A DNA stretch of 64,000 nucleotides, taken from contig OU015569.1 of assembly GCA_907165135.1 (NCBI GenBank), positions 372,001 to 436,000 of the forward strand, written 5' to 3'. Within the stretch, counting starts at the first letter, position 1. The number at the start of each line of letters is the position of its first letter. The DNA is from Oikopleura dioica (lineage: Eukaryota; Animalia; Chordata). The notes under the pieces are model-generated. The model ran no database searches. It was not told the origin of the DNA and saw only the letters and a program-made list of their open reading frames with translations. Both the position numbers and the translations under genes were made by a program. Below, one piece after another: positions 43,761-49,255 of the stretch.

Positions 43761-44979
43761 TCAATAAGAAATCTTGAAGATTAAATCTTCCAAAAATAGA
43801 AAAACGGATTCGGTACGAAAATTGGTACGCGGTACCGAATTCGCGGACGAGTTCTCGTACTTGGTACCAATTTTCGTACAAAAAATGACTGTTTTTCAGC
43901 GAAATACAGTCGTTTTTTCAAAAGAAACTCAATTTTCAACGAGTTGAAATTTGGCAAGCTTCTCTAGAATTTCGCCCTAGCTCTGAATGTTTTTGACTTT
44001 TGCCATTCACTTTTTCAACTCTTCGAAAAAAGAGACGAAAAAGTAGAAAAGTCCGAGCAGCGCGAAAAACAGGTAAATTAAACTTTGAAAACTTTGAATT
44101 TCAAAAATTTTTTAGTCATCGAGTTTTGAAAGAAAGAAAAACTGCTTCCAGTTCCAAAGCTCGATTTGTTTCTGAAAAAGAAAGAAAACATGACTGCTGC
44201 TGAGTTCCTGAATAAAATCAATTTCTGACTTTACAAAAAACGTCTTTCTTTTTCATTATTTTTTGAGGTAGTGGAGCAGTTGGTAGAAAAAAGGGATAAA
44301 TCCCAGAGCGGGACGTCTCCTAAGGTCCCAGAGTGGGAATAAAGAGAGCGTCCCATTCTGGGATTAGCCACTGCTTGGCTCGGAAACCTGTGTGAAAACC
44401 TGAGTCAGGGTATGAAAGATCTTAACAGAAAGGTGGCTCTTTCGTTGAAAATCTTTCTGACCCTGACTCAGGTTTTTCACACAGGTTGCCGAGCTCAGAA
44501 GCACTGTAGAAGAGAGAGAGAGAAAGAGTACTTACTCTGTTTGAGAGCATACTGGTCGCCCTTGAAGACCAAATTACACGCTTTGAAGCAGTTTTTGTAT
44601 TCTTTCAGAACTTGGGCTCGCTTTTAATGGATTTTACACAAAATAAACGCATTTTTTCAAGCTAAAATTCACCATTTCTTCTAAATATTATTCCTAATTT
44701 TGTTAAATAATTATTAAAATTAATATTTTTAATGATAAATTAAACAATTTTGAATAATTAGAAAATCCTCGCCAAAACAGCTGCCATCTCGCCAATTCTC
44801 TTCCTCGTGAACTGGTCGGGTGAGTCACGCGTGACTAATGACTCACTCTCGCAGCGCGCGCGCTCATTGGCGCGCCACTTCCCAGCCACCAACTCGCTCT
44901 TCCTTTTTACTTTCCGACTTTTCAGAGCAGATAAAACCGAATTGAGCCGTTTTTCGAGTCGAAAAAAGAGAAGAAATAA

Positions 44980-47326
44980 ATGTCCTTCGGCAAAGGCGAT
45001 TTCGGCGGCGGCTCTCTGAGCACAAGCCCCGGGGCGAGTTCCAGCTCGACGATGGACTACAACAGAATCACACAAGTCGTTTCCGCGAACACCACGAAAA
45101 TTCAAAATCACGTCAAAGAGATCAAAAAATTAGCTGAACAAGTTGGAACCGAATTGGATAATTCAGACGTCAGAACTAAAATGTAAGTCTTTTCTTCATT
45201 ATTTTATTATTAAAATTTCGAGAAGCCGAAACCTGCGGCTTCTAGCTTTAAAGTATAAAAGCCGCGCGAAGCGCGGCTACTTTACTTTGCTTTCTCGAAG
45301 CCGCAAGATTCGGCTTCACGTTTTTAATGAGTAACAGATTGAATATTACTACTTTTGACTCGAAATTCATTTCATTTTTAGTCAACAAACTCAGACAACA
45401 ACAAAGCGATTATGTCAAGACACAGAAAAGTTACTAAACGAGTTAAAAGGTCTTCCCGCGCCGGATTCACCCGTAAGACCCCCTTTTCCCCTTCCTGTAA
45501 CTGACTGTAACTCTTTAGGCGGAGAAGCGGGAGCGAAGAATAACCCTAACTCGTCTGGCGAACAATTATTCGAACGCGCTGAACGAGTACCAAAGAGCAG
45601 TCGCGACTTGCTCAATCGCGAAAAGGCCCAAATCAGCCAACAGAGCAACTCATCCGAGGGCAACTCTTTGATCGCGCTGGATAATGGGTAAGAATCGAAA
45701 TATTTTGCGGCTTTGAGCATCAAAATGGCCCGAGCTCAGCAACCTGTATAGAGAACCTGAGTCAGGGTCTGAAAGATCTTATAAGGCTTTTTATTAAAGA
45801 TTTTTCAGACCCTGACTCAGGTGTTCTACGCAGGTTGCTCAGCCCGGGTCTTTTTGTCGCAAAAGCCGCAAATTTTATATAAAGCGCTCCGCGGCTTTTG
45901 TAATTTATCAATCCCTTTTTAACGTAAAATTCTAGCGCTGGTCAAGCCCAATTGCAGCAACAGCTCTCGCCAAACGAGATGGCTCAAATGCAGGATCGCG
46001 AAAACGCGATCATCCAGCTCGAGGTAAATCAGCAGCAGCAAGAGCAAATTGAGCTGGACCCGCTGCAACGGGCGCAGGACGAGGAGCTGGGCCGCCTCGA
46101 ACAGGAAATTGAGGATATGGCCGAAGTGTTCACGGAGGTCCACAAACTCGTCCATGAACAGGGCGAAGTTGTCGGTAAGAAGCCTTTTTAACTCTTTCCA
46201 AACGACTTAAATTTTCAAATAATTAAAATCAATGAGTGCTATTTTAAAATTTTACTGATTGAATGGCTTTTACACGTGATAATTACTAATTTTCAGATTT
46301 AATCAGCCTGAATCAAGACTAATAGATAGGGTCGCCATTTAACGGAAAAACGACTCTATGACGTGTTTGTTTTAACGGATTTAACAATCTTCGATAGGGT
46401 CCCCTTTTTAACGGATTTTCTGGAACCTAGATCAAGAAAATCCGTTATTTAAGGGACCCTATCTAAGATTGTTGAATCCGTTAATACAAACACGTCATAG
46501 AGTCGTTTTTCCGTTAAACTGGCGAGCCTACTTCTGTGTTTTTTTGATATGCGAGTATTTTTTCGATTTGTATTCAAAATTTGCCATATCCTCAAATTTC
46601 CACGTCCTGCGCGGTCCCGGCTGAAAACTGCAAAATTCCGATTCGCAAGATTACGAATTCTGAATTTGTGTTTTAGGCGGACATCGCGGACGTGAACATG
46701 ATTTTCAAAGACCTTGCCACAATGGTGCATGATCAGGGCGAAATCATCGGTAAGTTTCAATTTCGGGGACGCCCTTTTTTAAAATTTCTTGTTTTCTTGA
46801 TTTTTGGATTTTATGTTTAACTTATTCGTTTATTTATAATCTCGGTGTTCAAAGTTGAAATTACATTTCAAAAGCTTAAAATATTTTTTAGACTCGATCG
46901 AGCAAAACATCGAAACTGCAGTTGTCGACATTCAATCAGGAAATACACAGCTTCGTCAGGCCCGAGAGCATCAGGTGTGTACGAAGTTCTAGAGCTACCT
47001 ACTTTGTGTAGTTTTGAATCCCCATCGACGCCTCTGATTGGTCAAACGAGCCCATATCTTTGGAAAAATGGGAAGTGCCTCTGATTGGTCAAGCAAGCGC
47101 TTTTCCCTTTCTCTAGAAATATGGGTTCGTTTGACCAATCAGGTGCGTCGATAGGGATTCAAAACTAATTCGCTTGATTAGCGACACTTTTTTCTCGAGG
47201 CCTCTCTTTTTAAAACCATATTTTCAGCAAGCTGCGCGGAAGAAAAAGTTCATCATCGCCATCGTCTTTCTGATCTTCATTCTGGTGCTGTTCCTGATCA
47301 TCTGGTTCTCGTGGAAGACCTCGTGA
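44980..47326 (+). CDS. STX7/STX12: Syntaxin-7/12-like Qa-SNARE with alternative SNARE half-exons
   Basis: DYNRITQVVSANTTKIQ, RLANNYSNALNEYQ, AIIQLE|ADIADVNMIFKDLATMVHDQGEII|DSIEQNIE, TM FIIAIVFLIFILVLFLIIW. Confidence 0.93.
46339..46517. repeat. ~180-bp near-perfect hairpin in the syntaxin intron between the alternative SNARE exons
   Basis: TTAACGGAAAAACGACTCTATGACGTGTTTG... pairs with ...CAAACACGTCATAGAGTCGTTTTTCCGTTAA. Confidence 0.85.
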
Positions 47327-48539
47327 GTCTTTCCCAGTTCTTCTATCGTTCAACTTAATTTCTTCAATTTCTTTTATTCCTTCCAGAGATTGACCTTTCT
47401 TGTTTTTGCGAGTTGATTTTTTCTCCGGGTTTTTTCAGTTTTATAATTTAAAATTCTATTCTTTTCGTTCACATGTCAAAAAAACGACCCTGGAAAATTT
47501 CAACCGCTGTATTTTTTTTATCACAATTACGAACTTACACACTTTCCGCTACGATTCTTATTTTAAACAGACACGGTATTCTAGAGTCTCTGTGACCAAT
47601 CGACAGTACACTTTATTTTTACTATCATTCATGTTCAATGTCCGGTGAATTTTACTGTGCAATTCTCCAATTCTAGCTGAAGTTGACCCACTTTTCTTAC
47701 CTTCCGCTGGGCCCCCTTTTTTCTTCAACTTAACCTCTTGCCATTTTCGAGCGGTTTAACCCGTTGTGCGCGGCGCTTTCCTCCACGCAAACGGGTTAAA
47801 AATACGGGCTGGTGGCACGAAGCGTCAAAAAGTTTGTCTGTGTGGCTATTTGACTGCTGATTGGCCGGTTCGCTGAGTAAAGGTTTCTTATTGGCTTTAA
47901 GTTTTTGGCCAATCAAAAGCCTGTGTTCTGTCTACCGGCTAATAAGCAGCCAAATAGCCATACATGCAAATTCTATCGCTTCGTTCCTTCAATTCTCAAG
48001 AAATTCATGCTCAACTCCGCACAGACAAAGCAAAATGACAAATTTCCGCAACTGTATTACTATTCAACATTCGTATTTCCACAAAACCACTTCTCAATCT
48101 AACCATTCATCTATTTCAGAACTTATGAGAAAAGCGCTTCGCGACAGGAAGAGTGCTCCAGCTCCAGTTGAAAGAGGAATCTACTGAGAAACTGGAACTC
48201 CGGTCCGGAGTTGAGCAAAAAATGGAAAGTGAAGAGCGGAAAAAGCCGGCTCCAGCCAAACATTCCAGCGCCGAAAAATGGAGCAGGTTCAGGCGAAGAC
48301 GAAGAAAACGACAGGAACCGCGAAGAATCATCGGAAAAGCTTCAGGCGAAGAAGACTCAGAAAATGACGACGGAAACGATCGGAAAAACTCCTTTACCCG
48401 ATTATGCGAGGAAACAATCCTCTGCTGCTCTATATTATTCAATGAACCATTACACCTTTTACACTATTACACTATTTTTTTAAACTCAAGACTCTTTTCA
48501 ACCTTTTCTTGTTTTCAGAAACCGGATAAAACTCAAAAG

Positions 48540-49255
48540 ATGCCACCAAAGTTCGATCCCACCGCCATCGTCGAGGTCTACCTCCGAGTTGTTGGTGGCG
48601 AAGTCGGTGCCACTTCCGCCCTTGCCCCAAAGATCGGTCCCCTCGGTCTCTCCCCAAAGAAGATCGGTGACGACATCTGCAAGGCCACTGGCGACTGGAA
48701 GGGTCTCAAGATCACTGTCAAGCTCACCATCCAGAACCGACAGGCTCAGGTAACCCTTCATCCTCTTCCTTCTTCTCGTTTTGATGGCCAAGACCGCGGG
48801 GCGGTGCCCGTTTAAAGCAAAGAACTTGTCGGGATCCGCTAAGGAGGTGGACTCACCTGCGTAGCTTTTCATGGTCGAGGAGGAGCTTGTAGCTTCACTG
48901 AATAAGTTCGAACGATTCTAGGTCTCCGTCGTCCCCTCCGCCTCCTCGATGATCATCAAGGCCCTCAAGGAGCCCCTCCGAGACAGAAAGAAGGTCAAGA
49001 ACAGTAAGTCCCCCTCTTTCTATTCCTTCCGCTAATCGCAACTGCTCAGTCCAGCACAACGGTAACATCACCATGGACGACATCATCAACTGCGCTCGAA
49101 TCATGCGACCACGATCTGGCGCCCGGGACCTTTCCGGCACCATCCGAGAAATCCTCGGCACTGCCCAGTCCGTTGGATGCACCGTCGACGGCTCCGACCC
49201 ACACGATCTCATCGAACAGATCCGGGCCGGCGAACTTGATGTTCCTCTTGAATAA
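48540..49255 (+). CDS. RPL12: 60S ribosomal protein L12 (uL11), 3 exons (48540-48749, 48922-49003, 49050-49255)
   Basis: MPPKFDP...[28 protein letters not shown]...[18 protein letters not shown]|[18 protein letters not shown]...[14 protein letters not shown]. Confidence 0.98.
48781..48862 (+). promoter_or_regulatory. Intronic RNA element resembling the 28S rRNA GTPase-associated centre (H42-H44), candidate RPL12 autoregulatory site
   Basis: GTCGGGATCCGCTAAGGAG matches eukaryotic LSU GUCGGAAUCCGCUAAGGAG 18/19, ACTCACCTGC matches 10/10, and AGACCGCGGGGCGGTGCCC matches AGACAGCAGGACGGUGGCC 15/19, all in collinear order. The rRNA reference is from memory of the human/yeast sequence. Confidence 0.8.

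Follow-up and report, generated by a model that had tools for sequence, protein, structure and literature searches.

Does the syntaxin-7/12-type gene of the larvacean Oikopleura dioica encode one protein or two? The question arises at a locus of seven exons, a gene for a Qa-SNARE, which occupies positions 44981-47326 (+) of a 64,000-nucleotide (nt) stretch of DNA. This stretch, referred to here as the window, covers positions 372,001 to 436,000 of contig OU015569.1 in the Okinawa assembly GCA_907165135.1. A sequence-only reading of the window had proposed that exon 4 of this gene can be left by either of two splice routes, each supplying a different N-terminal half of the SNARE motif. The present analysis makes it very probable that, throughout the clade, the gene gives two full-length proteins by two exclusive routes, and the same can be said with only slightly less assurance for the window's own lineage. 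The overall explanation set out below, which combines the two isoforms with a splice choice linked to an RNA helix, is likely to be the best available account of the locus.

The two routes part at the end of exon 4, which closes with QDRENAIIQLE and is followed by GTAAAT, the first splice donor (donor 1). For isoform A, the canonical form, donor 1 at 46024 is joined to exon A. For isoform B, donor 1 is ignored, the reading runs on for a further 151 nt (segment B), and a second donor at 46175 (donor 2) is joined to 46892, with exon A skipped. Segment B comprises 50 open codons plus one base and is followed by GTAAG; exon A comprises 24 codons plus one base, likewise with a GTAAG donor. Both routes lead from phase 0 to phase 1 and enter the exon that begins with DSIEQNIE (exon 6, at 46892) in frame. 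When B and A are joined, a stop codon falls inside A, and when neither is included, the frame shifts and the membrane anchor is lost. Of the four combinations of two donors and two acceptors, two are thus in frame, and both in-frame messenger RNAs (mRNAs) exist. Because the inclusion of both segments and of neither shifts the frame, A and B are exclusive at the protein level. The open frame of B with its own donor, the phases of both routes and the frame break caused by including both segments had all been claimed from the sequence, and each claim held. B has no acceptor and is contiguous with exon 4 in all eight taxa compared and in the mRNAs, which sets it apart from a cassette exon. The event is an alternative donor coupled to the skipping of exon A, not a pair of cassettes.

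The conservation of B was followed in the window and seven further taxa from marine metagenome contigs, together with further short open reading frames (ORFs) from databases. At the DNA level, exon 4 ends in QLE/GT in 8 of 8 taxa (a slash marks the splice site), and B extends for 46-58 open codons before an invariant G/GTAAG. The short ORFs all read from exon 4 into B, and all but P0015 continue as Gly-Lys, matching G/GTAAG. Because the open frame, the phase and the G/GTAAG donor recur in eight taxa, B is more than a chance reading frame. The GT of donor 1 is also kept in all eight, with a variable hexamer. Between most taxa the synonymous sites are saturated, the proportion of synonymous differences (pS) being about 0.8. 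Over the last 32 codons of B, the mean proportions of nonsynonymous and synonymous differences (pN/pS) are 0.206/0.800, a ratio of 0.26, which is similar to the neighbouring constitutive exons (0.159/0.833 in exon 4 and 0.158/0.720 in exon 6). Exon A is nearly invariant among seven taxa (pN 0.010). In the three closest taxa, similarity extends up to GGTAAGAA and then collapses right after donor 2. Because pN is low at saturated pS and similarity collapses after donor 2, B is a coding sequence under purifying selection. The check on conservation that the sequence-only reading had recommended thus came out in favour of B.

Direct evidence for isoform B comes from transcripts of sister taxa. Metagenome contigs were scanned with a degenerate pattern that requires the end of B (KLVH[DE]Q[GA]Exx) to continue directly into DSIE. 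A single match was obtained, L017, a fully spliced, mRNA-like contig of 1653 nt with an ORF of 297 residues. L017 consists of exons 1-4, B, exon 6 and exon 7, and exon A is absent. Its exon 4 and B are 100% identical to the genomic contig L015, from which it diverges exactly at donor 2 to continue with DSIE. A word search of 90% clusters with the L017 protein retrieved B forms from two more distant taxa, namely P0025/L022 (293 residues) and P0026/L019 (298 residues). The B mRNAs of the three sister taxa are complete and in frame, with start, stop and membrane anchor. A forms are available from the same three taxa (P0019, P0028 and P0029), and their protein is identical outside the swapped segment. 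Among the mRNAs of these three sister taxa, a small sampling, none with both segments or with neither was found. A representative search of the whole library with exon 4 plus B as query returned 10 short genomic ORFs only and no full-length B protein, a negative that is not proof of absence, as a B form could share a 50% cluster with the A form. With B-only and A-only mRNAs in sister taxa and purifying selection on B, the earlier proposal that one gene yields two Qa-SNARE isoforms, different in the N-terminal half of the SNARE motif and in linker length, is supported.

For the lineage of the window, RNA evidence is provided by one oligo-dT marine plankton metatranscriptome (X1), with contigs 95-100% like the window. 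Record 1 of X1 joins exons 1, 2 and 3. Record 3 represents the A form, in which the last 11 letters of exon 4 are joined to exon A and followed by exons 6 and 7. Record 2 covers 45935-46147 unbroken, passing donor 1 and following B for 124 nt. The other 21 letters of this record most probably belong to the end of exon 3, which would give the exon 3-4 junction; a stretch of about 19 nt there would agree with the depth in the bin 45609-45709. The two RNA forms are similar in depth (2.38 and 2.71), and no cover was found in X1 over 46215-46618, the rest of the intron.

Several observations weigh against two proteins and have to be set beside this evidence. The sequence-only reading had predicted two junctions, of which 46023>46677 was seen in the window's lineage; 46174>46892 was not seen among the X1 contigs of that lineage, but the B-DSIE junction is present in the three sister taxa. 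In the window's lineage, the RNA contig that enters B falls 27 nt short of donor 2, and it may be an intermediate that was still unspliced. The transcript P0018/L018 has its upstream introns removed, reads through B and retains the next intron; therefore, processing intermediates exist. Three bulk RNA runs carrying the species label (X12-X14) gave no read on 44700-47700 at 93% likeness. Their label probably covers a cryptic lineage other than the assembled one, so the zero reads are no evidence for or against isoform B. In the genomic contig L021 (700-760), which is 94% identical to the B-form mRNA L022, the Gly codon of QGE and the phase-1 GT donor are missing; B may be broken or lost in this lineage, or the scaffold may be in error. 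The AlphaFold model of isoform B has a mean pLDDT of 65.6, and its SNARE part is predicted with low confidence. The model places a coil at residues 187-200, after which a single helix begins at 201 and continues to the anchor; it was not used as evidence.

Such observations invite the explanation that B is noise from read-through or intron retention, or an unproductive decay target, and that the A form is the single protein. The retained-intron RNA P0018 and the read-through into B in place of the B junction in the window's lineage would fit, as would the standing of the A form, which is the sole annotated form and is assembled several times more often (10 members in cluster P0019 and 21 in P0028, versus 4 each in P0025 and P0026). 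Noise would nevertheless not be expected to keep frame, phase and G/GTAAG in eight taxa at saturated synonymous sites, with a pN/pS close to that of constitutive exons. Complete in-frame B mRNAs in three taxa have already largely refuted this explanation, which is now highly improbable.

A different objection concerns the number of genes. One JGI sample supplied both the A-form and the B-form mRNA of one taxon. The two are identical over their 3' 451 nt and differ by 6% over the 5' 620 nt; they are alleles or strains, not necessarily from the same locus. This divergence would be accommodated if the A and B mRNAs came from two paralogous genes. However, the 30 coding differences between them are all synonymous, the 3' identity is complete, and the window and six relatives (L001, L003, L005, L011, L014 and L016) hold B and A in one locus, followed by RPL12 in the contigs that reach far enough. 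Because the same-sample mRNAs are alleles or strains, the one-locus argument rests on the genomic contigs. With both segments in one locus in the window and six relatives, two paralogous genes were rejected as an exceedingly improbable source.

The origin of B becomes apparent when it is compared with the canonical half-motif. Against exon A preceded by the last 19 residues of exon 4, B aligns in register and shows 10-15 identities in 43 positions, with z = 5.5-7.8 against shuffles in seven taxa. HMMER brings B and the exon after it into register with the SNARE motif of syntaxin-13 (PDB 2nps_B), glutamine opposite glutamine. In the more distant taxa both copies open with Ser-Pro, and B lacks an intron where the canonical copy is split. 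These features mark B as an old, diverged and intronless duplicate of the exon 4 tail plus exon A. It may have been inserted into an older exon, which would have given rise to the donor-1 intron. The sequence-only reading had described B as a diverged duplicate with hydrophobic heptads and a zero-layer glutamine, and the in-register alignments agree. B duplicates the exon 4 tail besides exon A, and hence carries a full set of layers from -7 to +1. The layers were assigned by a spacing count against the syntaxin-1A layers. By this count, the exon 4 tail provides layers -7 and -6 and exon A layers -5 to +1, while B reads, in every taxon, L, L, I, M, F, V (T in one clade), V, Q and V/I/M from -7 to +1. 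The zero-layer glutamine is present in both isoforms, as the residue opposite the syntaxin-13 glutamine in B and as the invariant glutamine of VHDQGE in exon A.

Outside the N-terminal SNARE half and the linker, isoforms A and B are the same protein, with a common Habc domain, C-terminal SNARE half and anchor. The linker of isoform B is about 26 residues longer in the window: the old -7/-6 turn is retained in it, and the new SNARE helix follows. Exchanging the N-terminal half may alter the nucleation of the SNARE bundle, the closed conformation with Habc, or the choice of partner or SM protein.

How might the choice between the routes be made? In the intron between B and exon A, the window contains two stretches complementary to B: 46583-46598 pairs with 46106-46121, and 46599-46612 with 46072-46085. 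Global folds of B with the intron were too long for interpretation and were replaced by local antiparallel alignment and by duplex prediction in an 80-nt window. Local antiparallel alignment of B with the B-A intron gave 33 in one taxon and values of 41-65 in the six others, with 25-31 (standard deviation 3-4.5) for shuffles. A distance of 42-55 nt separates the end of the best complement of B from exon A in six of these seven taxa; in L014, where the alignment is longer, it is 20 nt. According to the duplex predictions, the intron element is 60-80 nt long and ends about 30-55 nt before exon A. The length of the B-A intron ranges from 193 to 505 nt across the relatives, yet the position of the intronic arm is steady.

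The complement also follows B in evolution. Predicted duplexes between B and its cognate intron have a mean energy of -63.9 kcal/mol, versus -41.3 (standard deviation 9.4) for non-cognate combinations. The cognate pair is best in every column. Among 5040 permutations of the seven taxa, 1 attains the observed sum; through shared ancestry the seven amount to about five independent lineages. All ten control segment pairings fell short of this result: eight were null and two marginal, namely the region after B with the intron between exon A and exon 6 (21/720) and the intronic arm with the same intron (46/720). The helix is present in the minimum free energy and centroid folds of both the window and L016, and sister-taxon comparisons show 0-6 compensatory pairs each. 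The intron element is complementary to B and co-evolves with it, and for this reason the pairing of the two is probably a splice-choice helix. The folding energy of the region is very low (z = -16), mostly on account of the MITE-like hairpin (resembling a miniature inverted-repeat transposable element) at 46338-46518. A MITE-like inverted repeat also lies in the 3' untranslated region of L017 (L017:1370-1600; gggttaacccttgcgggtaaaaaatgaccaattag and its complement), and a similar motif is found in the B-A intron of L014.

A long duplex of coding exon and downstream intronic complement is also the classical layout of an RNA-editing substrate, known from the editing of glutamate receptors. The helix, which is nearly perfect, could accordingly serve to recode B rather than to choose between splice sites. 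Such editing should leave A-to-G differences. Between the B mRNA L017 and the genomic contig L015 there are none over 248 nt; in the window's lineage, the sole difference in B is G>C at 46084, and a single A>G (45972) lies outside the helix. RNA and DNA in these comparisons come from different individuals. The editing substrate was rejected for want of A-to-G differences inside the duplex, and is considered very unlikely.

The splice-choice helix can be put in mechanistic terms. Introns of O. dioica usually measure about 47 nt. Folding would shrink the 653-nt intron in front of exon A to an effective intron of the animal's usual size. In this state, donor 1 would lie next to the branch region of exon A, and donor 2 would be looped out, placed at the far end of a stem of 60-80 base pairs, so that isoform A would result. 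When the helix is absent, donor 2, a strong consensus donor, would win, and isoform B would be produced. The out-of-frame product in which B is joined to A carries an early stop and would be cleared by nonsense-mediated decay. For this assignment, with the formed helix giving A, the absent helix giving B and decay removing the mis-joined form, the chances are put at about even.

Two features of the helix count against this scheme. Projecting the helix from one sister taxon to another breaks many pairs, and the model leaves unexplained why donor 2 skips the acceptor of exon A. No clear second pairing that would explain the skipping was found among the region after B with the A-E6 intron (the intron between exon A and exon 6) or with exon 6, exon 4 with the arm, and the arm with A. 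Competing pairings for one docking site were likewise not found, exon 4 with the arm, the arm with A, and A with the downstream intron being without cognate excess.

The skipping of exon A would be accounted for if the polarity were reversed. The helix would then mask the area just upstream of the exon A branch site, so that the folded state gives B and the open state A. The U2 small nuclear ribonucleoprotein anchors close to the branch region, near where the second arm ends, and this arm lies only 30-55 nt before exon A. In L003, moreover, the predicted duplex takes in donor 1 from its first base onwards. The duplex of the six remaining taxa, however, begins 6-27 nt past donor 1, which leaves the donor free at the base of the stem. 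An open state should also allow donor 2, stronger and nearer, to win the acceptor of exon A and to give an out-of-frame product, yet the A form is the one more often assembled. The reversed polarity is a live alternative, though held to be rather unlikely. A combined reading is similarly doubtful: the helix would be a true two-state switch that ties the choice of donor to the skipping of exon A, and isoform B would enter an endosomal SNARE complex of its own, with other partners or another closed state of Habc, in some tissue or at some stage peculiar to larvaceans. If so, one gene would do the work of separate syntaxin genes in other animals.

Alternative SNARE motifs are known from other genes. 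SNAP-25a and SNAP-25b are products of mutually exclusive copies of exon 5 (PMC2581893). The present gene resembles SNAP-25 in that a tandem duplicate within the SNARE motif is used alternatively and two SNAREs arise from one gene. SNAP-25 is an exocytic Qbc-SNARE with two equal cassettes, whereas here an exon extension of 151 nt alternates with an exon of 73 nt in an endosomal-type Qa-SNARE. Syntaxin-3A and -3B reportedly differ through alternative exons that alter the SNARE domain, 3B diverging in its C-terminal half and anchor. The resemblance is that alternative exons change part of the SNARE domain of a syntaxin. In the present gene it is instead the linker and layers -7 to +1, the N-terminal half, that are exchanged. 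In FGFR2, the exclusivity of IIIb and IIIc is enforced by the reading frame, with decay of mis-joined forms. In the syntaxin gene, too, inclusion of both or neither shifts the frame, and decay is a proposal only.

Long-range pairing in introns also has precedents. In yeast, intron helices shorten the distance between donor and branch site. The proposed stem is similar in that it would bring donor 1 and the exon A branch region within roughly 40-80 nt of each other. Unlike the yeast helices, it would also decide between two donors and thereby between two proteins. Mutually exclusive splicing through pairing of docking-site and selector RNA elements is described for Dscam1, srp and 14-3-3 zeta (PMC4691838, PMC3535345, PMC6071210). 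These systems share with the present locus a conserved, co-evolving long-range complementarity in the alternative region and a complementary element that derives from duplication. They rely on competing intron-intron pairings, in which several selectors vie for one docking site, whereas here a single pairing is seen, with one arm coding (B) and no clear competitor.

The locus is set apart from these known cases by the combination of an endosomal-type Qa-SNARE, a swapped N-terminal half, an exon extension, and a helix arm that is itself the alternative coding segment. A literature search yielded no description of such a swap for syntaxin 7/12/13 or for Oikopleura. Isoform B was found in no public annotation, nor in any public protein beyond the metatranscriptome fragments. 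It is a conserved, unannotated product of a gene central to trafficking in a chordate model. The two isoforms form a natural chimera, the difference being confined to the linker and SNARE layers -7 to +1. Specialists interested in the part played by the N-terminal half in nucleation, the closed state and partner choice would otherwise have to construct such a swap themselves. The locus also offers a compact case, within less than 900 nt, of RNA-structure-linked splice choice in an animal with normally tiny introns.

The probable assignment of the gene to the syntaxin-7/12 type is based on several matches. Pfam recognises Syntaxin_2 (E = 1.1e-20) and SNARE (E = 3.5e-16) in its protein. The best solved relative is the Habc domain of syntaxin-12 (PDB 2dnx, E = 1.4e-19), followed by the SNARE motifs of syntaxin-13 and syntaxin-7. 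Syntaxin-12, -13 and -7 rank above syntaxin-1A among the solved matches, and frog syntaxin-12 is among the word-search matches. The N-terminal three-helix Habc domain is indicated by the Syntaxin_2 and 2dnx matches and by AlphaFold helices at residues 21-54, 62-90 and 98-147 (pLDDT about 85-94). The C-terminal anchor, as read from the sequence, consists of RKKK and a run of about 22 hydrophobic residues that leads up to the stop. The NCBI model g13363.t1 (P0021; Oidioi.mRNA.OKI2018_I69.XSR.g13363.t1) agrees with the window exons, which places the window in the X-specific region of the Okinawa assembly, and contains the A form only. The coordinates of all features are collected in Table 1.

Table 1. 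Features of the syntaxin-7/12-type gene, numbered from the first letter of the window; the helix arms are predicted.
Feature	Position	Strand	Remarks
Exon 1	44981-45182	+	Start codon at 44981; junction 45182>45382 in metatranscriptome X1 record 1; agrees with P0021
Exon 2	45382-45472	+	Followed by a 46-nt intron; junction 45472>45519 in X1 record 1
Exon 3	45519-45687	+	Third Habc helix and linker; frame break near 45589-45597, within 45586-45600
Exon 4	45936-46023	+	Constitutive; ends in RENAIIQLE, providing A-form SNARE layers -7 and -6; X1 record 2
Donor 1, GTAAAT	46024-46029	+	For isoform A; doubles as the first B codons (V, N); X1 record 3
Segment B, 151-nt alternative extension of exon 4	46024-46174	+	Q/E-rich linker and own SNARE layers -7 to +1
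Donor 2, GTAAGA	46175-46180	+	For isoform B; G/GTAAG invariant in 8 taxa
Helix arm 1 (inside B)	46043-46137	+	Cores 46072-46085 and 46106-46121
MITE-like hairpin in helix loop	46338-46518	.	87-nt arms, 91% complementary
Helix arm 2, inverted partial copy of B in intron	46567-46632	+	Cores 46583-46598 and 46599-46612; ends 44 nt before exon A
Exon A, canonical N-terminal SNARE-motif half, layers -5 to +1	46677-46749	+	Junctions 46023>46677 and 46749>46892 in X1 record 3, as claimed for donor 46024 in the sequence-only reading
Exon 6, common C-terminal SNARE-motif half (DSIEQNIE...REHQ)	46892-46974	+	Sequence, X1 record 3, kept in relatives
Exon 7, basic stretch and membrane anchor	47228-47326	+	Stop at 47324-47326

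The frame break in exon 3 consists of one missing base, as a comparison of the window (tac caa aga gca) with the sister mRNA L017 (tac cag aag agc) shows. The relatives hold a single frame across exon 3, and g13363.t1 avoids the break in the window by omitting 18 residues (EYQKSSRDLLNREKAQIS). The probable cause is an error of assembly in a hemizygous part of the X, not a broken gene.

Further variation concerns introns and splice sites. The 46-nt intron at 45473-45518 is spliced in the window's lineage and is absent from the genomic contig of the closest sister (L015:508-768; L015/L017 lineage). In the second taxon, P0027 and P0028, both A-form, are distinguished by four residues (YPFS) where exon 4 starts, which suggests alternative acceptors 12 nt apart in that taxon. 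Smaller MITE-like palindromes occur in further introns of the syntaxin gene, at 45740-45830 and at about 45225-45290.

Downstream of the syntaxin gene, RPL12 follows on the same strand in the window (47327-48540) and in every related contig that is long enough (among L001-L006, L008, L011 and L012). The preserved order of the two genes is notable in a genus known for scrambled gene order.

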